Assembly: GCA_965202585.1 (NCBI GenBank)
Contig: OZ241827.1
Location: 23,374,001-23,438,000, forward strand
DNA length: 64,000 nt
DNA from: Thalia democratica
Lineage: Eukaryota
Direction: 5' to 3'
The translations under genes and the position numbers were made by a program. How positions within the stretch are numbered: position 1 is the stretch's first letter; the number at the start of each line of letters is the position of its first letter. The notes below the pieces were generated by a model, which ran no database searches, was not told where the DNA came from, and saw only the letters and a program-made list of their open reading frames with translations. This document shows positions 5,501 to 38,023 of the stretch, piece after piece.

Positions 5501-7828
5501 ATTAAATTCTACTATAAACGTTTAGTTTAAAAAGAGTGTATATGACACTATTAGTATAAGTTTAATTATTTTAAAAGCATTGTAATAACAAACACTTTGA
5601 ATCTTATAGTTTATTTAGATTTAAAACAAAAAAAAAGTATAAAGCTTAATAAAAATTAAACTTTTGATCCATATTTATTTGTAACAAAAATATACATCCA
5701 AATAGAAGACCAAAGAAAAGCCTCACTCACTAAAAGTTAAATAAAAAGCCGAGTTTTTGTGAAATAAAATTAACTTTATATACGGTAGGCATTTTGTAGA
5801 TGGATGGAACCACCAGGCTACGCGTGGAAACACTGTTGCTCCACATAGAAAAAAAAAATGAAAAACAAAGCGTACAAAAAAATCAAGTCTTAAATTTAAA
5901 GTTTTCAAAAATGCTGCTTGAAATGGGGCACTGCAAATGGAGCAGTACCACCTCGAACTAAATTAAAATAACTTCATCTTAAAGCAAAGGAGTTGAGTGA
6001 AAATGTTAAGAATAGGAAGCGCTCACGGCTCAAGACAAAATTTAGAGGATTATTTTAACGAGTAATTTTTTTCCTTAAACAAAATACCACGCAACATTGC
6101 TGTTTAAAACTAAACTGTTTCTTTAACTTAATACGCAACTTACGTATTTACAGCCAAGAAGAAAGCCAAAAAAAAAACTCTTTAAAAAGTCAAAAAAAAA
6201 AGGTACAACTCAATAACTATTTAAAAAAGACCCGTAAAATCTGATTAGAAATTAATTTCAAAAAAATATTTCGAATACTTAAAGTCATTGATAATGAAAA
6301 AATTGCAATGAAGCAGATGTATTTTAGATTAAAATTTTATTACAAGTTTAATACTATTATGATCAAAATTCCATTACTTTCTTTTTATAATTTTGCTGTT
6401 TTGCATTATTAAACGCTTTAACAAATAAAATGTTAGTGTTAAATATAGAGTTTTAGCTAAAGTTTGATGCTTTAGTAAAAAAACATCACATCAAAACGAC
6501 CGCTACTTTTAATTGTTTTAAACTTGATTTTTTGTACCTTTATTCATTATAGCATATATTCTTTTTTTTTTAATACTAGTTATTGTAATAAATAAAGTGT
6601 AATATAAATACTTCGAACCTTTATTGTATTTCTTATATCTTGTGGGTAATAACTATTTTCTAAGCACTTTTTGCCAAAAGCTTTTTTTATTTAATGTAAG
6701 TAATTTTTTTAGTATTTCGGTAAACACTTTTTCAGTGATCAATTAAAATTTAGATTTTTTTTACAAACATCATAGAAAACATACTCTAATATAAATTGTA
6801 GAACATCAGCTTCATATTAATTTTATTCTCTTTCTGCCTTTTAGTTTTTAAAACTTTTATATAACTTGATTGTGCATTGCACTTGAAACTTAGTAGACGA
6901 TTGATTAAATCGAGAAAAATATACATACGATTGCGTTCTGCAGTATTACATCAAATAAAAAAAGTTATGACTTAAATGACTTGTAGACTATCTTAAACAT
7001 ACATGAACGACTTATAAGTCAGAAAGTATTGTATACCTTTACAAAACGATTAAACCTGTTAACATTATATATAAGGTTTAGGTTGCATGTTTTAATTTTC
7101 GTGTTTTAACTAAATCATGGCATTTTGCACATTAAACGTTACAGTAGTTCTGTTAATAAATTTATGCAGTACATAATTAGAATTCAAAAACATATAAAAC
7201 ATAACTAAAGTAATTACTTAGTTTCATTTTAATAACGGGTTATCTAGTTGTGCTTAAATAAAAAACTAGACATCAATTTGGTATTTGAAAAATAGCAAAC
7301 AACTTTTAATTGTATAAAGTTTGGTTTGTTTAAAAAAACAAAGTGTATACTGTAATAAGTTAGTATTGACGGAAATCGATTTGTTAAAACTCTTAATTTT
7401 CGTTTTAAATTAACTTCACATCTATATCAATTTTTTTTTTTTTTAAATTTTAGTAAAATCTAAAACTTGTAAGGCTGATTGTTTAGTTTTTCTTAGATAA
7501 TTTTTTTTAGTTGAAGATTCATAGTTCTTTTTAGCTCGAGGTCGAGATGCAAAGAGGTGAAACTTGACAGGTTTAAAATAATTTTGCTTTTTAAAAAAGG
7601 TTGAAAACGTTTATTTATCTGAAAAATTCAAAGAATTCTAGTAATGTAGTAAACTTTAAAAATTATTATTTAAAAAATACTTAAAACATAATAAATTGAA
7701 TAACTTTAATTGTCTAAATCTAAAAAGAACAACAGTTTATTGAAAATGCAAATGAAAACGATAAAAGACACAAAAAAATAAATATTACGATTGAACAAAA
7801 CCTTCTAAGCTTCTTACACTTTTGCTCT

Positions 7829-10800
7829 TTATGCGTTCGACTGAAAAAAGCAATGTTAGTTATTTGTATTTAATTAATTAACAACATTAAATAATAATAA
7901 AAGTACGTATTAAAAATTTTTATAAAAGGTTTTACTCATTTTATTTAAGTAAGTTAAAAATGCTGTTTTTGTTAAAGCTCTAACTTAAGAATAAAGTTAA
8001 AACAGTTTTTCTAAATAACCAAAAAATTTACCGTAGGCTGTAAGTAAGCACCTAACAAAGTTTGCCTCTAATCGACTGATGTCATGCATTTTATTATTAC
8101 TTTTACTTACCCCAAACGCCATAGGGTTATCGAAACCCTTGCTCTGATCTTTGTTGTAAGTCGTGTCGGGAACAGACGTGCTCTTTGATGAAGAATTCTT
8201 CTTGTAGTAGATTCCACCAAACACTGCGGCCGCTATGACAACTATCAACGCAAGTATTATTCCGAACACGGCACCGCCTGAAAATTATTAAACAGAGAAA
8301 TTGATAGGCTCCAACTAAAGTCATAAACAAAACTGACTAGATAACAAAATAACTCAAGTTAAGATTTTGTTTGTAAAAAAAAGTTATCATATATTTCACA
8401 AAAACTAGTTTTTTTTAATAAATGTTTATTTGATAGTAAAGAGGCAAGAGTGAAGTCTTTAACTTTTTTAATTTAGTTGAAATTGTATCGTAAATCATAA
8501 GATGAGCTATTATATATATTAACCTGACAACCCAGTGCTAGAATCATCTTTGGACGGGTCAACTGGATTAATTGGTTGTCCGCCAGATCCTAAAAGTTGT
8601 TCGATTATATTTTAAAATTTTTACTAGTTTAAATGCTTTAGAAGTGGCCAAGGTTAGTTCAAAAACATATTGATATAAGTTACAACTATAAGTAACTTAA
8701 CTATGAAAAGTCAAGTTTTAAAAAGTAATGTTTTTTCAGTGAAATAAATATGTTAAATTTAATTTAAAACTACATTATTTTATAAATAATGCTGATAGCA
8801 GTTTTTTTTTAAAGGTGTTTTTTTACAAGCGTTACGTTTAAAAAAGCTATGAAGTCGAAAGAAACAACTACAACACTGCATGTAACACAACACGATGTTT
8901 TCAATTATGACGTCACACAACCTGACGGGTAGAAGCACCCAGTGATGTTGCCTCCGGCGAAAGTTCTGTCCCAGCAGCAGCCCCTGCTCTCAACACACTG
9001 GTCTTCGGTGATTCCCGCGAATCCGCACTCATCACGTTCGTTCACCGCCACCTTGCATACCGAGTATTCTGTTGAATATTTCGAATGTTGAGTATGTGTT
9101 TTCTCGAAATACTTAATGACTTGATCGTTTATAAGTGATATTAAGCTTTTTTAAGGTTAAGTTTTGTTGTTTTTGTTTTACATAGACACGTTCTTATAAG
9201 TTAGACCTGTAACACCTTAGTTTTTCATTCTGAATATTCAAAGTTTTTTTTATTCAATGTTTAAAGTCTTTTTATCGTTTTTTTATATAAAACAGATAAG
9301 AACTTCGAAATGACTTTGATTTTCATGTTCTATTTTATTAGAAATATTTATAAGTTTTATTATAAACATTGGAAAAAGTTTAATGTCTTTTATGACTAAA
9401 TACAAAAGAATATATTTTTTTAATAGTTATAAAAACACTAGTAAATAAAGATTTCTTTTGGGATGTATAATGTAGAAAAAATATAAGTTGTTTCAATTCT
9501 TAAAAAACTCAACTAGTTAAAATATGTTTTTTAAAACTAAATAAACTTTTAAAAAAATATCTAAAATTGAACCTAATTTTCTTAATTTAAAAATTGAATT
9601 TAAAAAAAAATCAATTCAACTACAACACAAAACGTTTCATACAAAAAAAAAGTTCTCAACCACAAAGCTTAAATCCTACAAAGTTAAAAAATCTATACTT
9701 TTTTCAAACCTTTAGGCCTCTTGCAGACGAACCCCCTGGTTTCGTAGCAGGGCACGTCGTTCCAGCTGCCGTCCCACGGGTACATCTCCACGCACTCCTC
9801 CCCGTCCTGGCCGTTCGGCTCCCCGTTCGCCCAGTTCGAGTACTGGTAAGGAGAACTGTCGCTCCACGTCCATCCCTCTGTATGTGACTCGTTTAGTTTG
9901 TATTAACTTTTTTATACTGCCAATTTTTGAGTACTGAATAGTTTTTCGGGTTGTGTTTTTTAGCAGTTTAGTTGTCAAATTTTCAGTTAAATTTATGGAA
10001 TTTTACTGAACCTATTCCGTTTTAGCCAAGTTTACTAAGTTACAAATAAGTTTTTTTTAAATAGTAAATTAATTTGACAAAAACTTTTGAACATTTCAAA
10101 ACTCACCGTATCCGTTGCTTCTGAGGCCGATGTACAAATTGTGGTAGTTGGGTGAAATCTTGTCGACCAACTGTTTAACTTCTTCTGGGCTGTGAAAGCT
10201 CGCAAGCTCGGCGTTTCGCTTCTTGCATGAAAAGTCCGCCTCCGCCCATGTTTTTGTTTCAGAAGTATATATTCCGGGCTGAAAAATAACTTCCGTAAGC
10301 TAGATTACTAAGCTTGATAGAATATTTTACTAGTTATTGTTTTTTTCACATCATATCGTGAAGTAACATCTATTTTTTAATTCTATTTCAATAAAGTAAT
10401 GTGAATAACAGTATTATACATCCGCGATAGAACGTAAATGGAAACTTGCCGTTTTTTGCTACTTTTATTAATACTAACTTTAAAAATGGAAAAGCTTAGT
10501 TTTTTAGTTGTTCTTAATTAGCACTTGGTAAAAACTACATTTTGTTTCTGTACAAATTACTTCAAGGCCAGAAAAAAATAAGTTTTGCCTAGCAACGAAC
10601 CTCTACATAGTAACAGTCCCTTCCGTCGCTGAACAACCAGTCGTTGTCGCAAACTCCGTCTTCAACGGGGGTTTCCGGGGGAGGGGGAATTTCCTGCAGA
10701 ATTTTCTTGCAAACATAGGGGAGCTGGGTGTTGCAGTTTACCCCCTGAAGCTGGTTGCTAAGCACCTGCCACCTTCCGTTGCTGTGTTATGAAAATTGCG

Positions 10801-13800
10801 TTCATTATTTAAGATGTTTAAATTGATTAAGTCGGTGATTGTAAAACAAAAAGGTTGAAATTAATATTTTATGTTATTTTCTTGCTCTTTTTATATGTGT
10901 TTTAATTAATAAGGCTATACAAAAAGTTTTACCCAAATGCTTAAATTTAAGTATGTTTTGAAACTAATATAATTTTTAAACTTCTTTCAACTCTATTTTT
11001 TTTGTTTCACAGTTTGTTTAAGATACTTTCTATAAAAAACAAAATCAACAAACTTCATCATTCTTCCACAGCCAGTGCCGGCCTGCAATGCCTCACCATT
11101 CGGCTGTTGAGTGTCCCAATTGGTGTATGTAACCGGCCAAGTGTCCGTCCACTTGTAGTTCGCCCTGGCTGCTGCTTGGTCCTTGAATTATTTTATAAAT
11201 CTATAACTTTAAGTAGACGTAACTCGGTTAACGTACTACTTAGCTTTAAAATGTTTCACTAATTGTTTGGTAATTTTTTTTTATATTTTAAGAAAAATAT
11301 TTAATATTCAGAACATAACGTCGTTTTACTTTATATTCAGTAATAATCAACTCTTATGCTATCATCCGGTGTATTTTTTTAATATTCCGTCAAAAAGTTA
11401 AATATGAAGCTTTCAATTGTACCTTCCTAGCGAAATCTTAATGAAATACATCGGAGTAATAACGTATGAGTCGTTTTGATTTGTACTAAATGTACATGGA
11501 TAAAGCTAAAGTAAGTAAAAAAGTTTAAACAGTTTTCACAAAACTGATCGAACTTTACTTGTTTTACTCTGGGTTATAAAAACTATACTTTTTGAAAATA
11601 TAGTTTGTATTTGAGTTTTTATTTTATTAGCAGAACAAGCTACACACAATAATAGTTTCTTTATGCTGTAAGGTAAAAAATGTGTGAAAAAAAACTAACA
11701 ACTTCAAAAGTCAGTCCAAACCACACGGAATCAGTAGTAACTTGCTGGAAGAAGTAACTGAAGAGAAGGTCATTCTCGTACAGTTCTGCAACACTGGCCA
11801 ACTCTATTCCTTGGCCTACAAAAAAAACAGTATCAAAGATTACAAAAATATTTCATTATTCAATATGCTTCAACTAAAACTAAAATTTAAATTTACAATA
11901 TTTGTACAAACTCTCTAAAAATAAAAGTCCCACCTTCGTTCTTGCAGGCCTGCTGGGCCGCGGACCAGGTGTTGGGGGTGGTGACCAGTTTGAAGCACGC
12001 CTGGCTGCCAACCGACGAGTAGTAACCTGCGGGGCACCCGATGGGAGAGGTGGTCGCCGGGGGAGCGGGTAGCTGAGGGGATTTCCTCGTTGAGCAGACG
12101 AAGGGGATCTGCTGGGAGCAGTCGAGGTCGTTCCACTCCCCATGCACGTTCCCGGTTATCCGCATCTCCACGCAGTTCTCCTGCGATTATCCGTTTGTTA
12201 ATTGTTAGAAAAAATATTACCTACTTGTTGCAATTAACAACACATTTTCAATTAACAAGTTTGTTTGAGCAATAGTTACAAAATTATTTTCCTTTAAAAG
12301 GTTAAGTATAAGATAGTCAGATAAATTTAGACATAAGGTTTTAATCAGTTAATGCTTACTAAAAGCGTTATTTTTTAAACAGCAACACTATAGCCACGAT
12401 ACAAGAATGAATGTTACGATCTATTTATTAATTCATCAAAGACAAACTAACATATCCACCGCTTGGTTCTCCGGGCTGCCAGTTCGTGTAAACGTAATCT
12501 GATTGGTCGATCCAAACGAAGTATCCCGTGTTTCTGTCGGTCAGACCAATCCAAAAGTTGTTCGCGTCTCCCCATAAGAAGTTAACGAGGAAAGCCTGAT
12601 TTCAAATAGTTATTAAAAGCTGTTTTAAACTAACCGGCTAATTTGATTAATATAAATGAACAGCTTTCTTACAATTGTTTCTTATTACCTTTAGTGTTTT
12701 GATCAAATTGTAATAAAGAACATACAACTAACTTATTTCGGCTTATTTTTAATAAACAAAAAACATCAGGATTATAATTCTTTGATTTTCTTATAATTAA
12801 ATTTATTGTATATACAATATGAAAAGTTTGCTTAATCCATATTGAATGTTAATCTTATTTTATCACACGTATTTTTTTATACACTGTTAGTGTACAAACT
12901 TGCTCGTATTCGTTGGTTATCGATGCCAATTCTCCACCCTTGTCGTTGCACCACGCCCTTGCCGATGTCCAATCCAATGCGACCTGTAAGTTGTTTTATT
13001 TTCGTATTTACATTTATGTATTGTTTTTTAACATGTTTATTAATTTTTTTTGTTTTGATTGGTTTGGTCAAATCATGAGCCAAAACCAACTTAGTAACAC
13101 ATTTGTTGTTCGAATATTTATTGATACAAAAATGTAATCTAACGAAACCTGTTTCGATGTATTAAAATGTAGGTAATATAGTATTTAAAAAGACTTAATT
13201 GTTATTAAATTCAGTCATAAAAATACATATTAATCTTATTTTTCTAGAAACTCAATGCCTTTGTTTGTTGTTGAGCAGAATATTACAAAAAATTAACAAT
13301 CATACGTCAACCTACAGTTTCTAACCAAGTGTAATGCAGGAGTACTTTAAAGAAATATTCTAGAATGCTTCAAACCCATAAGTTATACGCGAATTAAGCT
13401 CATTTTTTGAACGTAGGTGTATCTTTTAAACTTTAATTTTATTTTAAGAACTTTTTTATGTTTCAGTAGTACTACTTCAAATATTGAATATTTGCTTTAA
13501 TAGATAAATAACACAACAATCATGCATAGGAAACCGAACAACCTGAACTCTTCAAAAGTGAAACAAACCTCTTTGCTGCTCATGTAGCAGTTGTTTCCGT
13601 ATTCGGTAAAACCCCCGGGACAGTAACCTTGTTGCGGGAGGGTGGGAGGGACGGTGACGGAAGATGAGGAGAGGAACTTTTCGCAGATGAAGTGGTTTGA
13701 CGCTCCGCAATTCTCATCGTTCCAGAGAGCGGTGTCCGAGTATATGTTGACACAATCTGTATATATACGATTTTGTTGTTTAGTATTTTTTATTATTATT

Positions 13801-16800
13801 TTCCAGATAAAAAATACTTTTATACTTTTGAAATGTAAAACCTTGAAAAAAGCTAAAGTGACAGACTTTTAATGAAAGTTGTGTCCAGAAATAAAATTAA
13901 TAAACAAACAAAAGAGTAACAAAAATCAAAGGAATTAAAAGTGTTTGCTTAACAAAAGAACTATTTACTACTTATGTTTTACTTATTTAAGGTTTGAAGT
14001 TTTATTATTTAAGTTGGTTTTTTAAACTTTCCTCATATTTACTGTTTATTGAACGAAAAAATGAAAAATCGCTCAAAGAGTTTTGTCCAAGGACTTGGTG
14101 CACGAAAAAACCTTTAGGTTATCGAGTCGTACACCACGGATACAGTTTTATCAGGTAACTTGTGATTAAATTGTCTATTTAGTTAAAGTATTCATGTCGA
14201 AAATAGTTTTAAAATTTTAGAATTAAAAACTTTTTTAGAACGTTAAAAGTAAAAGATTATATAACATACACTCTGTTAAGCCAGCAGCATTTAATTTATT
14301 GCATACCGTGTCTATAAACTGACCATATTTTGAGTAGAGAAAAAAAGTTACACAAAGTTTTTCAAAAACATAGTACTGACCTTCGCTATCGAGATAGTTG
14401 TTAGGCTCTCCAGCGTTCCAATTCACATAATCTATTGGTGAACCGTCCGCCCAAATAAATGTTCTATCTCCTCTGTCCTGTGAACAAAAGTCACTTATAT
14501 CATTTTTTTTCCGTTTTTTATATCTGCTTAAAAACAGCAACTAAAATACATTGAACATTTAAATATAATTATTGTAAACACTATTGTTTTACTTTGGATT
14601 GTTTTTTATTTTATCACAGCTAAAATTGTTTGAAACGAGGCAATACAACTTTTTTAACAATTAAAGAAATATAACATAAGTTCTAAGAAAAGTCTTCACC
14701 AATTCACAGGTCATACCAAGGTATATTCTCGTACACTTAGTATTCTGTCTTTAGTTTGGTTAAAGTTTTAATTTTTTAACCAAGTTTTTATTCAAGAATG
14801 TTCTTCAATTAAAATAAACCATATCGTTTCAACCATTAACAATTTAATAGCAAAAACAATGTTAATGCGACATTTCATTTTAACTTTCATTTTCATTTAA
14901 ACTAAAAACTAACACTGTTTTAAGATTTTAGAATATCTAGTCATTGAAAATTCAGATGTTTTTATTACAAATACAATGTAGCTTTAGGTTTACTATTCCA
15001 ATGTCAGCTCTATTAGAGAATGTTAAGTATTGTCATGGTCCAAAAAATATCAAAATTTAAACTGAAAAGGATCAATTTTTAACAAAAAGTTAAGAATAAA
15101 AATAGATACAGTGTTTAAGTATTTTGTATGTAAAAAAAGAAACAGCATACTGATAAGTGCGTGTGAATCTCCTTTCAGCTAAGACAAAGGCTGTTATAAA
15201 CAATCCATCTTACTTTATCATATAAAAAATACAAAACTCCAAAACCCACCCTGAGTCCTATCCAGAAGCTGGACGCGGAACTTATTGCGGTCCAGGACTG
15301 CAGCATCAAGCTTTCGTCGTCGCTGTGCACTGCCACCAGCTGGCCGCCCTGTCCCCTGCAGTAATCGTTCGATTGGGGCCAGGTGAGGCGGGAGGACTGG
15401 TCGTTGAACAGGTAGCACTTGTCCTGGTTGTACGACGTTTGGTACCTGACCTGCGTGTGACGTGTTGGTTTAAGTTCGGTTTTGATTAATTTTTCTCTCG
15501 AATTTTTGTATAAATTTTTGTTTAGTTTTGGGGCAATCAAACTTTCCTGAACATTTTTTACAGAAGCTAGTTTTCTCAGAAACGAATTAGTAATTCATAA
15601 AAGAGCTTTTAATTTACTAAAAGTTTTCATCGGTAAAACTTTCGTACAATTTCAAAATAATTAAGTGTCTTCAACATACTTTAAAGCTGGTTGAAAGCAA
15701 ACGTGTTTAGATTAAAAGAGTCTTTGTTTTAATTACTTTAAGTGTTAGTTTGAAGTTGTACTTACCCATGACTGGTCGGTGCCGCACGCGGGGTCAATCT
15801 CGCCCCTTTTAGGTGGTTCTGTTGGCGGTGCTAACGGTGACTTGCCCTTTGCTATTTTGCAAATCCAGTTTCGTTTGCTTTGACATTCAATGTCGTTCCA
15901 ACTGTTAAGATTACATTGAATGATATAAACAGTATATGTTTGTAACAATTTAAATTAGTTGTTAAAGTTTGGGCGAATTCGGAGGGCTTTTTTGATCTTT
16001 TTTTTTTTAATCTTTTCTCTCCGTATTTTTTCAAAGATGTTCGTCGAAAGATGAACGTCTTTTTTTTTACCCATTTTTTTGGCTACCTATAGAGTAACTT
16101 AACAAACATAGTTTCATCCACATCGCTTTCATTTAAGTTTTTCGTATTCAAAAATTAATATTTATAAGATCCTATTATTAAGCAGCAGTTTATGAGAGTA
16201 AGTTTTATGTTACTTTTACAATCAAAAATTAACTGCTATAAATCAGCTTACCCTTCAACGCCTGCGTAAAATTGTCCTTCGATACAATTTTCACTTCCTT
16301 CAAAGTTGTTGGGCTCCCCGTCACCCCAGCTATAGTAATCCGTTGGAGATCCTGAAAAAAAAAATTATATGTTTTTATATTTAAGTTTGAATTACAAACT
16401 ATAAAAAAGCATGTTCTATAAAAAATGTTAGTAATACAGAAGTAATTATATTTATATTAAAAATAAGCTTAATAGTTTGTGGCAGCCATTACCATAAGTT
16501 TAAACTTGTTTTAATGTTATTGTTGTGTTAAGTAAACATTTGTAACACCTGTAAAAAGTATAGTAAATATTTTCAAAATACATTTCATAAATTCTATAAA
16601 AACCTTCATTAAATACTATAAATTTATAAAGAAAACAATTAAAGAAATATTCTAAGCAACTTAACGTAGCCGTCAGCGTCAGGCTGCTGATTATTAAGCC
16701 TGATATGTATATATACACATATATATATATAGGAATCTGCTTGCGTAAAACTTCATCAAGAATATCATAACGTGCATTTTATGTAATCTTTAAAACCGCT

Positions 16801-19800
16801 CTAACTGTTTTCAAATTCCTTAAAAAACAGACTGACTATGTACATTTAAACCAATAAGTATTTTTTGTATCAGGTTATTTATAAAATATTCAAAAACATT
16901 CAAAATATCCCGAATTCAATTTAAATGCACAAAAATAACTAACCGTCGGACCACTGGTATCCGTCTTTGGGGACCAGGTTGTTCAGCCCTATCCAGAAGT
17001 ACACGTAAGAGTTGACGGTGACCCGCTGCACGGCCTGTATCACGCTCGCCTGCTCCTCCTGCGAGTGCACCGACACCAGGTCCGCCCCCAAGTGGCGACA
17101 GTAGTCCACGCTTTCCTGCCACGTCTTCCGGTCAGCGTCGTCCAGAGACTCCATCACCTGATAGTTGAAATATTATAAAGTTATTTTCGATGTCTTAAAT
17201 AAAATTGAATGTTTATATTCCTGAGCAGTAAGTGTCGATACAAAACGTGTTTCAGTATTGCTGTAATTGAAGATTTGTATAAGTTTAAAGTGTTTGCTAT
17301 TTAAATTTAGATTTTAAAAAGTTTTTAAACTTTTTTAATAAAGTAAACTTTTAGAGGTTCTAATACCATTGATTGATAAACAAAATTGACTTTACCAAAC
17401 AGATGATGTCTTTAAAAGCAATAAGCTGCAGTAGAAATTTCTAAACAAACAGCTACTCAAACATACAATAAATAAAATTTCAAAAAATATTGTTCAGAAC
17501 ATTATCACACCATGTAGCAGTAGGATGAAGTGGAATCGCTTAGCCAGCCATCTGGGCAACTCAATGAGGGATCCGGGGTGGTATAGGAAGGTTGCGGGTA
17601 TCCAACCCTCGGTTTCTCGCATACAAAGTGGTAGTCGTTCACACACAAGTCTACGTTCCACTTACCTGTCAGTTGTGAGAAGTGTATCGATCTTATAAGT
17701 TAAATGAGATAAAAAACAAACAGAAAACTTTTTAGTGATTTGACAAACACTTTATTAAATTTGACCCTTATTTTCTTTATCAAAAATACTTAATAGCATT
17801 GGCACTTATATAAAAACAACAGCATAGGTTGAAAAACTTAATTAACTATTTAATTTTGTCTATCGAACAAAATTTAATAGTTACCGAAGATGTAGTAAAC
17901 AAAAACTAATTGTATTTATACCCATTATACAACATCTTTATGAATTTAAAATACATCTAGATATATCAAACTCTACAAATTTAAAATACAGTCTAAAAAA
18001 GACGTTTTCCAACAGCAAACCAACCGTTGATGGGGTCGAGGTAGGTGCAGGCAACAGCCCGCTTGTCGCTGCAGTACATCCAGAAACCGTTGTACTCCGC
18101 ATCGGTGCTGCACCACGGCTCGTTCTGCCTGGCCGGAGACGGCACGTCGGTCGTGCACTCGTTGTACGTCACTCCCTTGTACGTGAACGGCAGCGCGCAC
18201 TCGTACCTCGTTTCTGTTGAACATTTGTATGGTATAAATTTATTTTAAATAGTTTGAAAATTTATTTTATTTATATTGAAAGCATTATTTCATTAGCCCT
18301 CAAATTCTTAAAACTCGTACCTTTTTTATACAAAAGCTATTTTAAAGAAATAAAATGATATTTTTTTCGTTTTTTTTTTACTCTAATTGTTAAGAACTTT
18401 TTGATGTTTAAAATTTATAACTACGCTAAAAGTAAAGTATGTTTAAAATATCTAAAACTTTTGTAAATTTTTTTCCTAGTGTTTCTTTTCTTGAAAACGC
18501 ACAATGAATATTTTGTTTAATGTAAGAAATATTTACGTATGACTAAAATTTAAAAAGTCAACTCGCAATGGTTTATTCTGTTTAACTTTTGATTTTTACT
18601 TTTGAGCCACAAGTTTTAGACTGTTTTATAATAAAAATTGATGCAATCGTCAAACTATGAAACAAATCTAACGGGGCTGTCCAACGTTCCAGTTTGTGTA
18701 AGTGACCGGCTCCTTTGATTCCCATTCGTAAACGATTTCGGCCATGTTGTCGTCTAAATTTCTTCCGGCGAACCCGATCCATGCTGTGTAGTTCAGACCT
18801 GGACGCAGTTTTGCGGACACCTGAAAGTTTTTAGTGTTTGGACACAACACGTTTTTTTAATTACAAACAAGTACATAAAACCAACAACTTTTATTACTTA
18901 CTTCTAACATTATTACTCGTTTACATGAAATTAAAAACCTTGGCTAAAGGTATATTTGAAAATTTGATGATATACTTTGTTATAAAAAAATAGTTGTCAA
19001 AACAGTTGTGTAACCTTAATATTTAACTAATAAAACGCCGATATAATGCGTATGACAGCTTTCAAATAAATATATAAGCCTTTAATTCTTTATAGCGGAT
19101 AAAGCAGTTAAAATTTTAAGGTAAAACAATGCTTATAAGCAGAAACCAAATCGCAAATACAATTTCAACTAACAAGCGAGTTGACGAAGGCTTGCTCGTA
19201 ACCGTCATTGATGCTGACCAGGTACGCTCCGTCTTTGTTCTCAGCGCAAATCTCCCTCGCATACCTGTATATGGTGTCGTCGGTGTTCACGTAGTAGCAC
19301 GAAGACTCTGTTTGACATGTCTCATAAACATTTACGAGTAAATACTAGCTGATAGCGGATAGGAAGTTATTAAACTTTCTTAAAATATAGTATCATCAGT
19401 CAAAAAATCTAAAACAACAATTTAGCAAGACAATTCAGGCATTAAAAAATCTTTAGGAAACTTAAAAACAAATATTATCTATATGTTCCTAAAGACCAAA
19501 TAAATTAGCAACCGACCATAGGCCGACCAGCCGGGGTCGCAGCCTTCTTCCACGGGCAAGTCACCAGTTCCCGTGTCCTCCATCAGTTGCTTGGACTTCT
19601 TACACATGTAGGGCAGCTGCTGGGTGCACTTCTTGTCCGACCAGTACCCCTCCAAACGGATAAATTTCACGCACTGCGGATCCTGACCATTTAATAAGTT
19701 TAGGTTGAGAAAAATAATATATTGCATTATAAGTAGTTTTTTTATGAAAGTTTCATGATAGATAAACTCTTAAAGATTTCTTATTATTTTTTTTTCAATA

Positions 19801-28800: not shown

Positions 28801-31800
28801 AAAAATTAAGAAAATTTATTTTAGTATAAAAACATTGTTTGTTTTACAATCGAATTAAAATATTTGAACTAACAGAACAAAAATTTTGATTCATCAGGCG
28901 AGTTGATCGAGGCGAGGTCTCCACCTGCGGCCTGACAAGCCGATCTGGCATCGAACCACGTGCGCGTCTGATCCCCGTTTATCTGGAGTAGTATCACATA
29001 TTTATACAAGAGATTTATAAAAAACATTTTAATCAGTTCCGGCACGAAACAGAATTAGCCTATTTATGATTGTAGAATTTTTTTTTATTAGTTACAAACT
29101 GACGAGGTAGCATTGAGTTGATGACGGGTCTGAGAACCATCCACCTCCCCCGCACTTGTCTTGGTCGGGTGAAACTGGAAGAAAAATATTTACAGATAAA
29201 TCAAACTTTTTTGACTTTCTTGTATAAAGATTTTTAAACATCATTTTCAGTGTTTTTTTTTAATTACTACATTTCAGTACAAATTTTGTTTTTATTAGTA
29301 TTAAAAACAGAACACCAACCAGTAGTTTGAATAACGATGGTCCGGATGCCAGAGTCTGTGTAAAAGTTTGTGATGTTTGATTAATTGAAACAATCATATT
29401 GGAACTTTAACGCAATGTTTAATCTAAAGTAACTGTTCGGAAAGAAATATCAACAAGCTTTTTTTGTACACAAAAACTCACTGTCTTCCTTTTTGCACAA
29501 GGGTCGCCTGTAGAGGGCGCAATCTTCATCATTCCAATCCCCGTTGGCCTTCATGGAAACGCAATTCAAAGTCTTTGTTGCGTTCACACCCCAGTTTTCA
29601 AATATTATGGTACTTTTGTCGTTCCATTCGTATGCAGAAGCCCCCATTTCGAGACCGATCCAGTACTTTTGCTGAGAGTGTCCTGAAAGTATTTGTTGGA
29701 CTTTTTAGCAAGTTTTGTGCGGAAAGAAATAATATCATAAAACAAACTAAAAGTATTTTTTCAAGTTTTTCATGTCTTGTATTTATGTTGAGAAACGGTT
29801 TGCTAGAGTAGTATAATTAAAGTTCATTCAAAGTCCTATAGTTTTAAAATTAAAAAAAGGAAAATATCAGCAAAAAATTGGAGTAATAAACCTAGTTAAC
29901 AATAACAATTATGTATGTTTTCAATTTCCTGAAACCCGAGCTAAAGTACAAAGTGCCTACTACAAAGTTTTGACCGTTTATTATTACTCTAATTAAAACA
30001 GAGACTACCAAACTATTTTTTAGCAACGAACCCACAAGGAAGCTTTGCTCGTTTTCATCCAGAATCGATGTCAGCATTCCGTTGTTCTGTTGGCAGAATT
30101 CCTTGGATTTTTGAAAAGTCATGCTGCTGGTTTCAAACTTGTAACACTTGCCATTGTAGTGTCTCCATCCTTCGTCACATTTGCCGTCGACTATATGACG
30201 TAACAATTTAGTGTTTTATTACTTTAGCTGTCTTTTTAGACGCAAAAAGTACAAATAGTTTGGATTTATTAAAGGTCTTTAGTCACACAGCTTGCTTTAC
30301 AATTAAATTTTTTCGAGTGTTTTGTTTAAAAAGTAAGAAAAGTTTTATAAACTTTTTAATCCTTATTAAGTTTTAGTTTTTTACAAGCCTACTTGTTTTT
30401 TTTTTGTTTAATTTTACAACTGTTTGTACAATTTTGCTTAATAAATAAAGAAATATGTACTACATATATTTATATATTATTTTATAGAACAGCTATCATT
30501 TTTTAACTGTATTTTACACTCTTGCAACTAACTAGTGATGGTTCCACTACCACTGGGAGCCAACTTGGCACCTTCAGGAACCGTGCAGACGTATGGAAGT
30601 TGCCTGAAACAATCCCCACTTTCCCAGTTGTTCACGTTGTTGCCCGTGTAAATCGTCATACAGTCGTCTCTACCTATCAAACAAAAAATTTACAACATTA
30701 GCAAGTATCTAATGTTTTAAACAGTTTACTTACAAAAGTGTTCGAATATTTCTGTGCTATTTTTTTTCTTTGTTTAAATTTCTTGCTATATTTATGTTTT
30801 CTTGTAAGGAAATATTCACTTAAAGAAATAGATACAAAACTACTACGCGAAAAAGCACATACAACATAGTATTTAAGTATATAAACTTTAGAAAAATTAA
30901 AGATAAATTTTACTTTGTTGTTGAAAAAGTTACTACTAAAGAATTATAACTATAATGTAGTAATTTATTAACTTCTTTTTTAAGTGAATAAGACCTACAA
31001 CTATTTTTTGGCTACATCGAAACAGAAAAATAAAATGTGAACATTTTATTTAATTTATTTAGTGTCTAAAAGAATTCAAATTTCCTATTAATATAAACTT
31101 ATAACTATCTAATTAAAACAATAAACAAAACGAAACTCGCAGACAAACAATAATTTAAAACTTGTTTTTTTCTAACTTTGTACGTTTTTAGGGTAACCGG
31201 CCTGCCAGTAGTACTTCTCAATTGGTGACCCGTCGGACCACCGCCAGTTGCCATCGCTACCTATGTCCGAGCCTCCCAACCACAGCTGATCGTGACCAAT
31301 TCCGCGAAGGGCCTCCAAGATGGATGCAAAATAAATCTGCTCCGAGTCACTGCAGTTGTAATTTGTTTTTAGTTTTTGTTTGATGGGGTAGTAAAATTTT
31401 ACAAACTTTAGTTCCAAATATATTTTTTAATGTATTGTCTAAATATTTATGGTTTAATATTTTGCGTAGTAAGTTCTAAAACATTTAGTTATTTTTTACG
31501 TTTTTTTTTTTTGACAATAAATTATTATAGAATCCTTAATACTTATCAAAACAAAAGTCTATTTTTGGTATAAGAAAAGTATATTTTAGTTTAATATGTA
31601 ATTTCCACTACCTTCATGCTTTTAACAGGTATATAAATAACAAAACAGAGACTGACACTTAATGGTAACTAATTATTTGATAGAGAACTTAAAATTTAAA
31701 GTCTTTGTTTTAATCACCTTTCAATTTTTAGCATTTCAGCGCCGATAAACTTGCACTCCTCCTTGGCATTGGTCCAGGTCTGAACCCTGTTGGCGTTGAT

Positions 31801-34800
31801 GACTATTTCGTAACACTTGCCGTCCAACAGTGTCCATCCTGCCGGGCAGTCACCTGAAAGTAGGTTAGAATCACAATTTTCTAGATTGAATAGTTCAAGC
31901 AAAACCTTTGTAATAAAACTTAAATGATCACTGTGCAAAAAAAAATCTTTTTAAAGGTAGGGGTCGGTAGCCATTTATAAGTGACCGGCTAATTTTCTTA
32001 GAAAATGTTGCTCGCGGGTTGCAATCTATAGTAAAATGGGGTTCTTAGGCCGCAGTTATTCTAATTAATGTAGCAATAAATTCAAACTAAAATACAACAA
32101 AGTAATCAATAATAAAAGACTAAGAGTTACTAATTATCAATATTAGATGTAATTCCTCACTACAATTTTTTAATTTTTTTATAGATATTAGCTAAAAAGT
32201 AAATATCGGGAAGCATATTTATGCTTTGCGGTCGCATTTGGCCCGCAAGTTGCAGTTTGCCGACCCCTTATCTAAGATTTTATTTAAAGGTTCTACTCGT
32301 TTTTTAGGTATCAAAAGAGGTATAAATTAAATACTTTAAGTCAGGTAAATTTAATATAAGCCTGCATTGAAGCCAAACAGATCTTTAAAACTCCTAGACA
32401 TCAATTTTTCTTTATTTTTTTAAAATTGTACAAAACAAGTTAAGAAGAACTGTAAGTTATTGTTAAAAAAATAATGTTAAAACTGAAATGAACATTTGTC
32501 TGCTTTAATATTTATTTTTCAAATTTAGATAAGATATTGCCACTTTGAATTTAAGATTCAAAAAGCATAAACAACAAGTCTGTTCCACGAACCGATAAGA
32601 CCACGTTCACATATAAACTGGAGCGGCTTGCTACACTTAGTAACTGTCCACTTCCAACTATTCGGCTCGGTCATCTGGACACATGAGCTTCCCGTGTACT
32701 GAGGTCTGTTGAGGAAAATTTACTTGGTTTACTTTAAACATTTTTGTCATTATAAAAAATACTTATAAATTCTTAAACTATGCGTGCTATAAACATCAAA
32801 CTTGTATGATACATACTTTAGTTATTTTTTAAGGCCTGCCGAATAATCAAGTATATTAAGTTATAGATTATTTTACTAAAGAAATTATTAAAATGTAAGG
32901 CAAGTTTAAATTTTTTTAATAATTTACATTAAAACCGAATAAAAATAAAAGTTTGTTATAGAAAGAGTCTTTGAGCTTGCTTTTTATAGAATAGAATATT
33001 TATTTAACGTAAACTTATATTGTTCTTGTGTGCGAATTCATACTAAAATCTACTGGGTTGTCTCGAAACAGCGTAGAAATTTCATTAAACTTACTAACTT
33101 TTTACAAGTTTAATATTTTTACTTGTCATTATAATTTAAAATAATTATGAAAGTTAAAATATAATCACAAAAAGAATAATTTATAACATTATTTGTTTAA
33201 ACAAAAACCTTGAACTTAAAAACTATTCATAATTACTATAAATTTTAATTTTAGCTAATTGCCTGAAAATCAGTAAAAAAGCTAAACTTTGCCCCAGTAA
33301 AGTAAACATTGTGCTGATATAGTATTTTATTTATTTGTTTTGAAAATTTAAAACTTTTATCTATAGGTTTTCTCCTTTGTAATATGCAATTAATGTTAGA
33401 ACAAACATGTTAGCAATGTCAACAAATGCACTACAAACATAAACGTGACTATTTTAAAACAATTGTTTTCATACAGGCAACGTTAAGTAAACAAATTCAA
33501 ATTTTTAGTTGAATAATTTTTATACTTTTATTTTATTTTTGTTTTAAAATTCTAAAAATTTCATGTTTGTGCTTCTACTGAAAATGTAAGTAAACATTAT
33601 ACATTGAAAATAGTCCGTTAAACATTTTTTTAAATTATTAACAAAAATATATTATTATTAAGGACAGGTTTTTAGTACGCAAGTTATATTTACTTGCTTA
33701 CGCACTTGAAATACTATTTTTGATTCAAGTACTTTTTTTTTAATAAACTATCTTACTAATTAAAACTTGAACTTTATTTCATTACAAAGTATAGGAACTT
33801 GTTGTTCGTTGTACATCTACTAGATTAAAAATTTTAATATGTTAGTAACTGTCAATTTTTTATTGACTATAAAAAAATTTGAGTTAAAAAAGTCCCAAGT
33901 GCAGATACTAGTTTTGGTATACAACGTCGTCGTTTGAGCTCATTTCACATTCAGCTACGAAACAAGCGTTTTAGACATATTAATTTTTTTAATTAAACTA
34001 TTGCTTGGTTTTCTTTAGTTTAAAAATGCACTTTTTAAAGGTTACATTTAATAATAAATTCTCACTTTGGGGGTGTACCGCTTTTGAAATTTGTGTAAGT
34101 GTTGTCTGCGGCAGAAGGGTCCACCCAGCTAAAACTCCCTGGTGTTACCTGAATAAGAAATATTTAAAAAAAAATTAATCGACTTTTTTATAACTGAATA
34201 ATCTTTTATTTTTCTCTAAAAACTTAAAAAGGTTCTAAAATCTTGCTTGCTATGCCTAAAAACCTCTTCAAGTATACTGGTACAAAACTTTGATTACCGA
34301 CTAACTAGATTTTTTTCTTATTTACTGTAAGTTTACTTTAATATATATTTTAACTTGACAGTATCTTTAGAAATTACAATTAAATTAGAAAACGTTAGAC
34401 AGTCTATAAAATTTTGCAAAAACTTCATAGTATTGGACTAAAAAGTTATAAAAATGTCAAATTCTAACTTTACGCTTTTGTTCAATTTTACTTTACAGAG
34501 GAACAGTTTACACAAAAAAATCAACTCACGGTATCGGAGTACCCTATGTAGTACTCTTTGTTCTGCGATTTATCGACAAGCCCCTCGACGAAAGCCTCCT
34601 CGTCTTGTGATTGGACGGAAACCAGCCAGGATCCCTGCCCTCTGATTTGTTAATTAGATTTACATTTTGATTTTAACATAAGTAAACAAAATTGCTAATA
34701 AGTTTCAAACAGCGCAAACCAATATGATTTTTTTGCTTTGATTATTAGAAATTTTTTAAAAAACAAACGTATAAAATAAAACAGTTGCATGCTACCTTAT

Positions 34801-37800
34801 ACTTATTTTTATGGTTTTAATGGGATTTGTTTATTAATAAAGCACAATTTTCAATGGTAAAGGTAAATTTCAAATAAATTTTTATAAACATTCTGAAGCT
34901 TTATAGATAAAGCTGCATTTAAAATAAGATAAAAAGGAACGGTGTATTTAATAATAAAAAAAAATTAAAGATTTTGTAAAGGTACTTTTCTTTTTTTTAC
35001 TTCTTTTATCTACAACATTCTGTCTCAGCCACATGAAAAAGTTGCTACTTACAGCTTTACGTCAAATAGTACATATGTTTAAAATTTAGTTTAAAGGTTT
35101 TAAGTGCTCTTTTATGTTAAAAAAGTTTTTTTTAATTCGGTTATACAACATCTACACAAGCTATTGTTACGTACTTGCACTCAAGATCGGCTTCGTGCCA
35201 CGTTTTTGCTTCACTGCTGGGCTTGTAGCAGCTGTCGCTACCTGGCCTTTCGGACCAACCTTGTGGACATTTGGCCGATTGGGCTGAAACATTTTAAAAC
35301 TTAAAAAAAGTGCTTGTGTCTATAAACTACTACCAAAGTGTAATTTAAAAAATGCTTGTAAACTACGTATAAGCTATCTTGTGTATAAACATAAACACAG
35401 TCAACCAAAAAATGATTTTTAGGTTTTTCAAAAAACTGAGTTTCGCGAAACTACCTGACGGGGCGCGGCAAATGTAGTTGGTGGCGCGGTTGCAGCTGTC
35501 ATCGTTCCACTTCCCCCTCTGCAACGGGGGATCCACCATCATCTGCACGCAGTCCTCGTCCCCTTTGTTGTTCGGCTCCCCTATCAACCAGTTGCTATAA
35601 AAAAATATAAAATATTTAGCAGCGGTGCAGTGACAAGTCTTACGTAGAAAATAAGTTTTGTAATTTACGCCTTGAAAAGAAAAGCAGTGTTCTGAATTAT
35701 TACTTTTTTGTTGTTTTTCAAATAAAATAAAAAATTATAGGAGTTTTAAGGTTTCCTTTAAATTTTAATTTTCCTCTTACTTACAAGCTAGTTTTTGAAT
35801 AATTTTTATTTAATTTTTCAATAGTTTTCTTTAAATCACATGTTTGTAAAAAAATAAGTCGGTTTATGTAAGTTGTGTTTTTTACATCTTTCAAAACTAA
35901 ATTTGTAACTATAGTTCAACTAAACTAAATTTTAAAGTTACATAAAAATTAAACAAATATCAACTAATTAGTATGAATGTTAAAGATCGTAAAGTTTTGG
36001 GTCAAACTTGTTTACTCTTGCATGTGTTTTATTTGATTTGTAGTAATAAAAAATTTAAAACCAACTAATAAACAACAGTAGTATTTTCCTTGATTTTAAG
36101 ATTAAGCTTAATAAGTTAAGTGTAATATTCAAAATAGTTTTAAAGTTTTTGTTTACAATATAAAGGTTTAATTAAAAACGGTTTTTTGATAATTACAAAA
36201 AAAAAGTTGTAGATTTTTGGCTGAAATTCTTTATTTCAAAGTATTAGTTTTTAAGTCATTAAATTAAATTTACCTTAATCTTAATATTTTTAACAAACAC
36301 TAAACTATAAAAGAAGTGTGTCTAATCTGAGTTTCACTTTTAGTAGAACATCTAAAACTGACATGAACTAAATCTAAAAATATAACCCTTGTTCAAATAG
36401 AAAGATAAAGACTTAACACACGATTTATATTAATGATGTTGGATCGTTTACCTTGTAAGATCGTCATAAGGAATAGGATCTCCGATCCAATTGTACGTTC
36501 CTTCGGCATTCAAGTCGTTCAAACCAATCCACCACCTTATATTGTTCGATGTTTCTACTTTCTTGTACGCCCAATCCTATTTAAACATAAAATTTAGTTT
36601 AAAAATAAACTAGAGCATAAACTATAAATTAGTTTTAAATGAAAAACACCAGTATTTTACTAATTATCAGATTTGATACTAATACCAGCTTTTTGCACAA
36701 AACTTAAAGTTATTATACCTAAATGTTTATAAAAAATATATATTTACTTTAAGAAACCAACAAAGTTATAATACAAGTCAGTAATACTTAAAGTAATATT
36801 TTACTACATGTTAGGAAGTAAATAAGTTTATTTAAGTTTTAGAAATTTTGAAGTGTAAATCTTTTTATTGAAAATAAAAAACTTTAAGACGTATTAAACA
36901 GCGTCGTGTCATATATAGCAATAAGATTGCACATCATTTAACTAATAAAAAAAATAACATAACTTGGGTTTTCTTCAAAAAAATGTTTCACAAGTAAAAC
37001 TTTTGCTAAAAAAAAAACAAGCTTTATGACGTCACAACCAACCTGTTCGGCGGGGGAAGCGAACCAGGCTAAGTGACCTCCGTTCATCTGGCAGGTCGAT
37101 TCGGCTGCCGTCCACGACTGCACGGGGTCTAGGCCCAATGTCTGGAAGGAAAAGTACCAGCAGTCGTTGCCGTAAAACTCCCAGTCCTGCGGGCACGTCG
37201 GCGCCGAACCTGTAGCAAAATATTATTGTTTGATTATTTAAATTATTTTGTTTTTCAAATCTGTTTGAAGATATAATAAGTAATAAAAAGTTAGTTTAAT
37301 ACGGTATTTATGTCGTTTAACCAAGGTTTTGCAGGCCGTAGGACATTTTACTTTTACATTTATTTAAACTTTGAAAGCTGTTTATAATCTGTTTTAACAA
37401 GTTAGAAATTATTCATTTTTGATGTTTCAGTATAGTTTAAGTGAGAATAAACTATTTTCTTAGAGTGCTTTAAAAGTTTTTCTGTTGCCCGTTAGTATTT
37501 TTATAATACTAAGTATTTTAAAGAGTATAAATACTTTAATTATGAAAGTCAGTACATTGTTAAAATAAAAGTCTGTAAGATATTGTTTCTGTTATGTTGA
37601 TATGTTTATTCTATAATTATAGGTTTTCTCCCATTGTCCCTGTTACTTTTTAATAGAAGTATTTTTGTATGCTTGTGTTTTTTAAATCTTAAAAAATTAA
37701 GATATGCCTGTGTTTTTATTAATCTATTATTTCTTTATTTATATTATCCGACAGATAACTAAATATATTGATAAAAATACTTACCTTTTCGAATGAGCAT

Positions 37801-38023
37801 ACTTCATTATATTATGCAGTTATATAAGTAAAGTAATAATGTATAAAACAAGTTCAATTTTTTCAGATTAACAAAGTTCGGAATGTTAATTCAACAATGA
37901 AAACTAATGATCTAAACTTTTACAAATGAGTTGTTTTTGTGCCCTAAGTTAGTATAAAAAAATAGTATGCTTACTTGTTAGAAGAGGTAGAAATAAAAAT
38001 ATTGCAGTTTTTAATGATAACAT
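7829..38023 (-). CDS. Mannose-receptor-like multi-C-type-lectin mosaic type I membrane protein (SP-CTLDx5-FA58C-FA58C[kringle]-LCCL-CTLDx7[FN2 in CTLD7]-trefoil-TM), about 2495 aa
   Basis: 56 exons, all GT-AG and phase-compatible: 37975-38023, 37043-37209, 36452-36576, 35455-35594, 35175-35283, 34530-34641, 34066-34148, 32593-32705, 31718-31853, 31177-31349, 30533-30673, 30032-30190, 29482-29682, 29320-29355, 29104-29174, 28874-28982, 28370-28516, 27839-28022, 27463-27586, 27050-27172, 26143-26280, 25564-25705, 25155-25271, 24309-24417, 23884-24017, 23322-23401, 22906-23028, 22591-22753, 22084-22214, 21704-21837, 21097-21137, 20646-20831, 20001-20131, 19517-19682, 19174-19307, 18673-18820, 18025-18213, 17511-17665, 16944-17157, 16252-16351, 15766-15901, 15250-15450, 14381-14477, 13569-13756, 12900-12983, 12452-12595, 11934-12180, 11703(or 11700)-11815, 11054-11181, 10601-10781, 10107-10278, 9710-9877, 8922-9068, 8524-8589, 8111-8277, 7829-7840. 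The sum is 7488 nt in one open frame. CTLD motifs seen include C-x2-GW, WIGL, EPN and WND. Confidence 0.93.
8111..8277 (-). other. Transmembrane helix and cytoplasmic tail exon
   Basis: [24 protein letters not shown], then a KK stop-transfer. The tail contains GFDNPMAF, followed by donor GTAAGT and a last exon SNA* at 7829-7840. Confidence 0.88.
8922..9068 (-). other. P-type trefoil domain exon
   Basis: [30 protein letters not shown]...GCFYP: six-Cys trefoil pattern in a phase 1-1 exon. Confidence 0.9.
9710..20831 (-). other. C-type lectin domains 6-12; a fibronectin type II module sits inside CTLD7 (exon 18025-18213)
   Basis: Seven CTLDs. The FN2 reads [16 protein letters not shown]...[17 protein letters not shown] and lies between ...NWNVGQP and ...[17 protein letters not shown]...FVCEK. 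Confidence 0.88.
21097..22214 (-). other. LCCL domain
   Basis: TIDCPAGC...VYGGG...[15 protein letters not shown]...GGSV...[11 protein letters not shown]. Confidence 0.88.
22591..25271 (-). other. FA58C domain 2, interrupted by a kringle domain (exons 24309-24417 and 23884-24017)
   Basis: [21 protein letters not shown]...ARATLQND / kringle C...[18 protein letters not shown]...[16 protein letters not shown]...[10 protein letters not shown] / [15 protein letters not shown]...ITLYG...YNIQFSDDG...LRLIPRTW...FEVMGC. Confidence 0.88.
25564..27586 (-). other. Discoidin/F5-8 type C (FA58C) domain 1
   Basis: [10 protein letters not shown]...GAWRGRLN...GGWQP...EPWLQVDF...KGVITQGR...WVTKYKV...FGGNSD...RLYPLEW...MRLEYIGC. 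Confidence 0.9.
27839..37209 (-). other. C-type lectin domains 1-5 of the receptor
   Basis: Five CTLDs starting CPQDW, CPQGW, CPAGW, CDEGW and CGGGGW, with W/Y-I/L-G core motifs. EPN plus WND occurs in CTLD1 and CTLD5. Confidence 0.9.
31958..32269. mobile_element. hAT (Charlie-like) MITE in a lectin intron
   Basis: Ends TAGGGGTCGG...TGCCGACCCCT, with a GC-rich subterminal GGCCCGCAAGTTGCAGTTTGCCGACCCCT. No clean TSD. Confidence 0.6.
37975..38023 (-). CDS. First coding exon of the lectin gene: signal peptide
   Basis: ATG at 38023 reads [16 protein letters not shown], followed by a phase-1 donor GTAAGC. Joined to the exon starting at 37209 it gives ...[13 protein letters not shown]. Confidence 0.8.

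Follow-up and report, generated by a model that had tools for sequence, protein, structure and literature searches.

A 64,000-nucleotide stretch of the genome of the tunicate Thalia democratica (NCBI GenBank assembly GCA_965202585.1, contig OZ241827.1, positions 23,374,001 to 23,438,000 of the forward strand), hereafter called the window, contains the gene for a giant mosaic receptor built largely from C-type lectin-like domains (CTLDs). The coding span (7829..38023, minus strand, counted from the first letter of the window) runs from a start codon at 38023 to a stop at 7829 and consists of 56 exons, which together give a coding sequence of 7,491 nt and a protein of 2,496 amino acids. This is one intact, transcribed, selectively constrained gene with one transcript, and its product is a type I surface protein with a signal peptide, a large ectodomain, one transmembrane helix, and a short tail. 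Its identity and its placement in the tunicate branch of the DEC-205-FUSE-type multi-CTLD receptors are regarded as almost certain. The window is AT-rich, with 23-36% G+C in 2-kb bins and G+C-richer islands from about 8 to 38 kb, and stop-free segments of the minus strand show CTLD, discoidin, kringle, LCCL, FN2, and trefoil sequence.

The gene model was built by splice-aware dynamic programming with a minimum exon length, which placed 56 exons on the minus strand with the 3' end at 7829; exon 1 was set by direct reading of the DNA, and exons 10 and 26 were adjusted from the alignment with a Styela orthologue. All three exons as adjusted are borne out by L001, an intronless contig of 7,690 nt from a Joint Genome Institute (JGI) marine metatranscriptome, in which an open reading frame (ORF) at 77-7567 encodes a 2,496-residue protein (P0173). 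The alignment of L001 to the window falls into exactly 56 blocks, bounded by the exon ends of the model, with 97.0% nucleotide identity, and the two proteins show 98.2% gap-free identity over residues 1-2496. Another sample yielded a further full-length contig, L008 (7,723 nt), with the same ORF. The 55 introns all have GT-AG ends and measure 118-1,360 nt (median 350). RNA contigs from two marine metatranscriptome runs cover exons only and have joints with CT..AC ends, equivalent to GT..AG on the gene strand, at eight of the predicted borders in the interval 22.5-28.1 kb: the joint 27586|27839 connects CTLD5 to the first discoidin domain, 24417|25155 connects the second discoidin domain to the kringle, and 24017|24309 lies within the kringle. 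DNA runs cover the introns and lack these joints. The coding sequence differs from the transcripts at 3.0% of bases, with dS of 0.125, dN of 0.008, and dN/dS of 0.064-0.069 (about 0.065), so the gene is under strong purifying selection; the source of the transcripts is a diverged population or sibling species and not the sequenced animal.

These data bear on the possibility that the giant frame is an artefact in which neighboring lectin genes have been joined, or a pseudogene in decay. The original prediction had no transcript evidence, and exons 33-40 and 52 occur again, as a partial duplicate, some 100 kb away, so fragments of this gene do get copied in the genome; however, two intronless full-length transcripts cross the 56 exons, RNA joints pass over boundaries between domain types, three further tunicate genera have colinear orthologues of equal length, and 2,496 codons are read without an internal stop at a dN/dS of 0.065. 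An artefact is thus most improbable. A two-gene or pseudogene reading is ruled out by L001, L008, the RNA joints, and dN/dS, unless the transcripts are chimeric assemblies. The prediction of a single gene and reading frame of 56 exons therefore stands, as the two contigs span all of the exons as one transcript and not as separate ones, and the coordinates, exon count, and list of domains proposed with it (twelve CTLDs, two FA58C domains, a kringle, LCCL, FN2, a trefoil, and a transmembrane segment) are exact according to Pfam and the transcripts. As a separate observation, the donor sites of the 55 introns have T at +3 in 33 cases, where A or G is usual, G at +5 in 48, and T at +6 in 44; the commonest donor hexamer is GTTAGT (13 introns). 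Intron 23 also contains a short segment (24813-24857) at which depth exceeds 11,000 and 31,000 in the DNA contig sets, compared with about 20-100 around it, and at which many contigs have loose ends; the segment is a repeat of very high copy number or a piece of a mobile element.

In order, the protein has a signal peptide, CTLD1-5, a first discoidin (FA58C) domain, a second discoidin domain interrupted by a kringle, LCCL, CTLD6-12 with FN2 inside CTLD7, a trefoil, a serine/proline-rich stalk, the transmembrane segment, and a tail of about 35 residues. Pfam finds in P0173 twelve Lectin_C matches (E 2.6e-214), two of F5_F8_type_C, and one each of Kringle (975-1046), LCCL (1166-1265), fn2 (1532-1574), and Trefoil (2371-2414); F5_F8_type_C also matches single exons of the window (1.7e-05), as do the four modules found once, with values given below. 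The borders between CTLDs, given here by residue, were drawn with a custom CTLD hidden Markov model (HMM) built from the protein itself, which places the domains as 5 + 7. Exon 1 (37975..38023; this and all following exons are on the minus strand) has the start codon and a hydrophobic signal peptide that aligns with that of Styela, and is followed by a GTAAGC donor at 37974 in phase 1. Exons 2-18 (27839..37209) encode CTLD1-5 (residues 22-160, 166-298, 302-436, 454-569, and 589-728), supported by the custom HMM and Pfam. The first discoidin domain, at about residues 753-927, occupies exons 19-22 (25564..27586); the best Pfam stretch is 768-921, and exons 20 and 22 match directly. Exon 23 (25155..25271) encodes the N-terminal segment of the second discoidin domain (residues 929-966), as indicated by alignment with a Styela paralogue (Styela C), an AlphaFold2 (AF2) model, and an RNA joint. 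The kringle (residues 968-1047, 243 nt) comes from exons 24-25 (23884..24417), with Pfam values of 3.9e-19 on P0173 and 5.8e-05 and 1.1e-13 on the exons, and the rest of the second discoidin domain (residues 1049-1169) from exons 26-28 (22591..23401), with the second F5_F8_type_C stretch, F5_F8_type_C_2 at 1054-1107, RNA joints, and a match to the factor VIII C2 structure in the PDB at residues 1052-1161.

LCCL (residues 1171-1271) is encoded by exons 29-31 (21097..22214) with phase-1 flanks, and matches Pfam at 1.4e-17 on P0173 and 4.7e-11 on exon 30. Exons 32-36 (18673..20831) encode CTLD6 (residues 1275-1408) and then CTLD7 for its first two thirds, up to “...WNVGQP”; exon 37 (18025..18213, 189 nt, phase 1-1) is the FN2 exon (residues 1528-1589, fn2 at 2.2e-11 on the exon); and exons 38-52 (9710..17665) give the C-terminal part of CTLD7 and CTLD8-12 (residues 1626-1764, 1785-1919, 1936-2062, 2078-2221, and 2237-2366). 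The P-type trefoil (residues 2368-2415) is a single exon of 147 nt, exon 53 (8922..9068), also in phase 1-1, with a Pfam value of 3.7e-12 on the exon. Exon 54 (8524..8589) is a short serine/proline-rich stalk, recognized from its translation and the alignment of orthologues. Exons 55-56 (7829..8277; 8277-8111 and 7840-7829) supply the transmembrane segment, a tail with the sequence GFDNP, and the stop, as seen by direct reading of the sequence, in which a hydrophobic stretch of about 24 residues is encoded in exon 55 and is followed by a tail of about 35 residues, and by comparison of tails.

Two of these modules are nested in other domains. The kringle follows the first 38 or so residues of the second discoidin domain, and the Styela C paralogue, which has no kringle, shows a clean gap at exactly that position. 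An AF2 model of residues 925-1172 has a pLDDT (predicted local distance difference test score) of 72, with 80-90 in the discoidin part and 42-70 in the kringle part, and aligns over its entire length with solved discoidin domains at a TM-score, normalized by the target, of 0.82-0.85, while matches to the C-terminal part alone reach 0.65-0.67; the model therefore suggests that the segment before the kringle completes the discoidin barrel. FN2 stands in CTLD7 directly after “...WNVGQP,” which is the site of the (E/Q)PN sugar motif, and before “WNVDLC.” The CTLD HMM splits CTLD7 into two pieces around it, and FN2 occurs at the same site of CTLD7 in all seven tunicate proteins aligned. Both inserts are kept in the three ascidian genera compared as well as in Thalia democratica, and provide two clean natural examples of domain-in-domain insertion among extracellular domains. 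None of the vertebrate, amphioxus, and annelid proteins scanned has the kringle, FN2, or trefoil, and all three modules are flanked by phase-1 introns (exons 24 and 25 for the kringle, exon 37 for FN2, and exon 53 for the trefoil). Module exons flanked by phase-1 introns are the classical signature of exon shuffling. Because of these flanks and the clean gap in Styela C, the kringle, FN2, and trefoil appear to have been added in tunicates by exon shuffling into phase-1 introns.

The same set of Pfam domains, in the same order and in proteins of the same length, is present in Styela clava LOC120344952 and LOC120344806, Ciona intestinalis LOC100186027 and LOC100175664, and Clavelina lepadiformis LOC143458877; Ciona has two genes with this set and Styela at least three. 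Ciona intestinalis LOC100186027 (XP_026694467 / XP_078489850; 2,494-2,495 amino acids) is 47.5% identical to the Thalia protein, and Styela clava LOC120344952 is 42% identical and colinear end to end; with Styela LOC120344806 and Clavelina LOC143458877 included, end-to-end colinearity is accompanied by only 42-48% identity. A 97-residue exon query against a representative protein library gave average identities of only 30-38%, and the near-identical P0173 came up in a word-based search instead. The kringle in discoidin 2 and FN2 in CTLD7 fall in the same alignment columns in the Ciona, Styela, and Clavelina orthologues as in Thalia, the transmembrane segment and GF(D/E)NP tail are the same, and the trefoil is at residues 2371-2414 in Thalia (P0173) and 2366-2409 in Styela. 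The tunicate kringle-type proteins are monophyletic (clade support 100), with one-to-one orthology among the paralogues an open fork in the tree. All of the tunicate entries are computer-predicted and go by “uncharacterized,” “macrophage mannose receptor 1-like,” or “lymphocyte antigen 75-like.” In the literature searched, experiments on this family are limited to Ciona robusta “MR” (XP_026691626.1 / F6TDB0, LOC100175664), which was followed in juveniles by reverse transcription quantitative PCR (RT-qPCR) and changed with Pam2CSK4 and fell after zymosan (PMC10433773). These changes are compatible with an immune role without being proof of one. That study (Front Immunol 2023) treats “MR” as a homologue of the mannose receptor with CLECT domains, and its passages that were searched do not describe the mosaic architecture; the protein is a paralogue within the tunicate clade of the Thalia protein and has FA58C, kringle, LCCL, fn2, and CTLDs.

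Beyond tunicates, the relevant description is that of Fugu “DEC-205-FUSE” (Zelensky & Gready 2004, PMC514892), a predicted protein of about 2,000 residues with five N-terminal CTLDs, a central region of LCCL and FA58C, and seven to ten C-terminal CTLDs, which had no human orthologue and, at that time, no cDNA (PMC514892). Teleost and lamprey counterparts are about 2,160 amino acids long and have twelve CTLDs as 5 + 7, and between the two blocks a rhamnose/galactose-binding lectin domain (SUEL) placed before the discoidin domain, of which there is one, and LCCL; amphioxus and the annelid Owenia have the 5 + 7 plan with other extras. The Thalia protein shares with this type the five tandem CTLDs directly after the signal peptide, as in salmon, lamprey, Owenia, and amphioxus; the discoidin/LCCL cassette (residues about 750 to 1271) that parts the two CTLD blocks; and the seven C-terminal CTLDs (residues 1275-2366) followed by a transmembrane segment and short tail, although the trefoil and stalk come between in Thalia. 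The vertebrate proteins have SUEL and one discoidin domain and no kringle, FN2, or trefoil, whereas the Thalia protein has two discoidin domains and no SUEL: PF02140 has no match in P0173 but does match the proteins of salmon, lamprey, and amphioxus and that of Styela D (LOC144425162), the tunicate gene closest to the SUEL-bearing vertebrate form. SUEL was not listed in the 2004 description of the Fugu protein (PMC514892), and is treated here as a variant feature, the absence of which is no bar to membership in the family.

Each Thalia CTLD was compared with the CTLDs of these proteins, and the best match was the domain of the same number in eight of twelve cases for salmon and nine of twelve for lamprey (chance about 1/12). 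In a likelihood tree made from the last seven CTLDs and the tail, the tunicate kringle-type clade (100) joins lamprey, teleosts, and Styela D (SH-aLRT 95), amphioxus comes next, and MRC1 stands apart (100). The GF(D/E)NP tail motif is common to tunicates, lamprey, and Owenia (AFDNPVY). The CTLD-by-CTLD match, the tree, and the common tail motif therefore tie the Thalia gene to the DEC-205-FUSE type. The comparison shows the 5 + 7 layout, the discoidin/LCCL cassette, and the FxNP tail as apparently old features, and the kringle, FN2, and trefoil as apparent tunicate inventions. The architecture had been proposed as lineage-specific and possibly undescribed, and neither proposal is supported in that form: the same set and order occur in Ciona, Styela, and Clavelina, the core extends beyond tunicates and was predicted in Fugu in 2004 (PMC514892), tunicate predictions are public, and a Ciona paralogue has been used as “MR” (PMC10433773). 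The full set, being conserved in the three ascidian genera compared, is thus not peculiar to one species, unusual as it is. It represents a variant of a family for which the first prediction dates from 2004, and public tunicate predictions already contain it, unremarked. In the literature searched, which leaves most subscription journals outside its scope, “DEC-205-FUSE” appeared only in the 2004 paper and in one unrelated text match, nothing was found for the tunicate gene and protein accessions, and no paper was found on the kringle/FN2/trefoil architecture.

The names given to these proteins refer to the mannose-receptor family, and the relationship deserves separate consideration. As the original prediction stated, members of that family do not have FA58C, kringle, LCCL, or trefoil domains, and the database matches of MRC1 indeed carry only ricin-B, fn2, and Lectin_C. 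MRC1, MRC2, PLA2R1, and LY75 begin with ricin-B, whereas P0173 has no match to PF00652 or PF24562 and its CTLD1 begins at residue 22; their FN2 lies between ricin-B and CTLD1, whereas the sole fn2 in the Thalia protein (residues 1532-1574) is nested in CTLD7; and they have eight or ten uninterrupted CTLDs, whereas Thalia has twelve, in blocks of 5 + 7 with a cassette some 550 residues long between them. In the tree, the mannose receptor is in a separate clade from the Thalia protein. With no ricin-B, no N-terminal FN2, and twelve interrupted CTLDs, the Thalia protein is, as judged from its sequence, not a member of the mannose-receptor family. Both do have an ectodomain of tandem CTLDs, a single transmembrane segment, and a short tail with F-x-N. 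Moreover, Thalia CTLD6, 7, 8, 9, 10, and 12 have as their best matches MRC1 CTLD2, 3, 4, 5, 6, and 8, so that six of seven domains agree at a constant offset, with CTLD8 and MRC1 CTLD4 giving the highest score in the matrix of CTLD matches. The best matches among solved structures are PLA2R, FcRY, DEC-205, MRC1, and Endo180, at consistent positions, with MRC1 CTLD4 on residues 1625-1769.

Because of the positional match of CTLD6-12 to MRC1 CTLD2-8 and the F-x-N tail, a common origin of the mannose-receptor family and the DEC-205-FUSE-type family is the simplest reading. A fuller scenario, which is put forward only tentatively and is rather doubtful as a whole, combines two ideas: that both families descend from one ancestor with at least seven CTLDs, of which the DEC-205-FUSE type would be the less reduced survivor, lost in tetrapods; and that the nested modules are functional grafts, with FN2 replacing the Ca2+/sugar loop of CTLD7 and the kringle placed in a loop of discoidin 2. 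If the grafts are real, the older lectin and discoidin folds would serve as scaffolds for new binding heads, in a natural parallel to loop-grafted binders. Apart from this scenario, the practical consequence concerns nomenclature. In fish, lampreys, amphioxus, and tunicates alike, annotation pipelines wrongly call the family “mannose receptor 1” or “LY75-like”; for example, P0194, P0200, and about 30 other teleost and lamprey entries are named “macrophage mannose receptor 1” despite having neither ricin-B nor FN2. Caution is therefore needed with “MR” or “MRC1” markers in studies of tunicate and fish immune cells, which may denote this different protein. What the present analysis contributes is a transcript-verified gene structure for a large, conserved, and barely studied receptor family; its additions are the 56-exon structure, the 5 + 7 plan conserved in chordates and in an annelid, the origin of the three added modules in phase 1-1, the nested insertions, the match to MRC1 CTLD2-8, which points to an origin shared with the mannose-receptor family, and a census of sugar sites.

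In that census, the EPN and WND motifs are both intact in CTLD1, 5, 8, 9, and 12, while CTLD10 has EPS/WND and CTLD6 has EPD/WSD; the motifs of CTLD9 and CTLD12 are conserved as far as lamprey and salmon. The EPN sites of C-type lectins bind mannose-, GlcNAc-, or fucose-type sugars through Ca2+, and the mannose receptor relies chiefly on CTLD4 for sugar, whereas the Thalia protein has five EPN/WND sites. It is probably a glycan-binding surface receptor; an endocytic or pattern-recognition role is plausible, with a likelihood just short of even. With five EPN/WND sites on one chain, the protein could bind repetitive glycans on microbes, mucus, or matrix at high avidity; ligands of other kinds than those of CTLDs could be added by the discoidin, LCCL, kringle, FN2, and trefoil modules, and the membrane-distal FxNP motif of the tail could mediate uptake of bound cargo through adaptors. 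The earlier proposals of lipid and lipopolysaccharide binding draw solely on other proteins with these domains, and would apply here by analogy. FxNxxY is the uptake motif of the mannose receptor, and FxNPxY is that of LDLR; the FxNP motif of the Thalia tail appears, by comparison with these receptors, to be positionally homologous to both. In the alignment of FDNPMAF from Thalia with SFDNTLY from MRC1, F-x-N is kept and the position of the tyrosine in FxNxxY is alanine.

An alternative is that the protein mainly serves adhesion or anchoring, tethering cells to matrix, tunic, or feeding mucus with the CTLDs adding avidity; by analogy, FN2 would bind collagen-type and the kringle lysine-containing ligands, the discoidin domains would contribute as well, and the trefoil would bind mucin glycans. 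The modules added in tunicates (FN2, kringle, and trefoil) are types generally known from proteins that bind matrix, fibrin, and mucin, the canonical tyrosine for uptake is absent from the Thalia protein and most tunicate orthologues, and whole-community RNA is deep enough to yield contigs of 7.7 kb, as expected of an abundant structural or epithelial product. However, proteins from annelid to lamprey keep the FxNP core of the tail, which corresponds in position to the uptake motif of the mannose-receptor family, and the nearest characterized relatives, MRC1, LY75, PLA2R1, and Endo180, are all recycling endocytic receptors; a mainly adhesive function is considered rather unlikely. Cleavage in the short serine/proline-rich stalk (exon 54) between the trefoil and the transmembrane segment could instead free the ectodomain as an opsonin or agglutinin that coats microbes or particles in blood or the gut lumen, and mammals do have the mannose receptor in a soluble form, but no alternative transcript without the transmembrane segment is seen in the two full-length contigs, and the transmembrane segment and tail are conserved under purifying selection. 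A mainly shed or secreted protein is accordingly quite improbable.

On balance a multivalent surface lectin with adaptor-coupled uptake is favored over these alternatives, with moderate confidence. Several points count against it. The tyrosine of FxNPxY/FxNxxY is missing from FDNPMAF in Thalia and from the tails of most tunicate orthologues, and endocytosis through the FxNP motif is therefore uncertain; EPN and WND are necessary yet insufficient for sugar binding; and the literature searched holds no ligand, cell-type, or uptake study of any family member. The model of CTLD7 with FN2 has a pLDDT of 48 from an alignment of seven rows, and the tree comes from a short search and includes a long Styela D branch. 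The RNA is from marine metatranscriptomes and represents not the animal sequenced but a population some 3% away from it in nucleotide sequence, and a single sampling campaign may have supplied both the Logan RNA runs and the JGI assemblies.

The untranslated regions (UTRs), both on the minus strand, and the surroundings of the gene were also inspected. The 5' UTR extends at least over 38024..38109, with L001 reaching 38097 and L008 about 12 nt further, and a spliced leader is not clearly evident at the 5' ends of the transcripts. The 3' UTR (7710..7828) has an AATAAA signal at about 7741-7736, and the poly(A) run of L001 begins at about 7713. No further homologous exon is present in the window outside 7,700-38,100. 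The 802-Mb assembly also has paralogues on contigs C4 (71.688-71.708 Mb), C6 (55.128-55.198 Mb), C287, and C289, whose discoidin-kringle-LCCL, FN2-in-CTLD, and trefoil exons are 45-65% identical. Three trefoil matches lie within 60 kb on C6 and suggest a tandem array there, and C287 and C289 are possibly the other haplotypes of C4 and C6. The partial duplicate mentioned above is inverted and lies at C2:23,268,588-23,273,555 (plus strand); it contains residues 1335-1745 (exons 33-40, FN2 included) and 2305-2366 (exon 52), and its two loci (L011 and L012) are 90-100% identical in protein to the receptor gene. The copy is segmental and recent, and is a gene fragment or else belongs to a chimeric gene. 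Directly upstream of the receptor gene, the first feature that looks coding is an intronless ORF of 293 amino acids with 55% G+C on the same strand (40171-41049), and two G+C-rich, coding-looking, stop-free segments at 51765-52118 and 55887-56397 belong to other genes.

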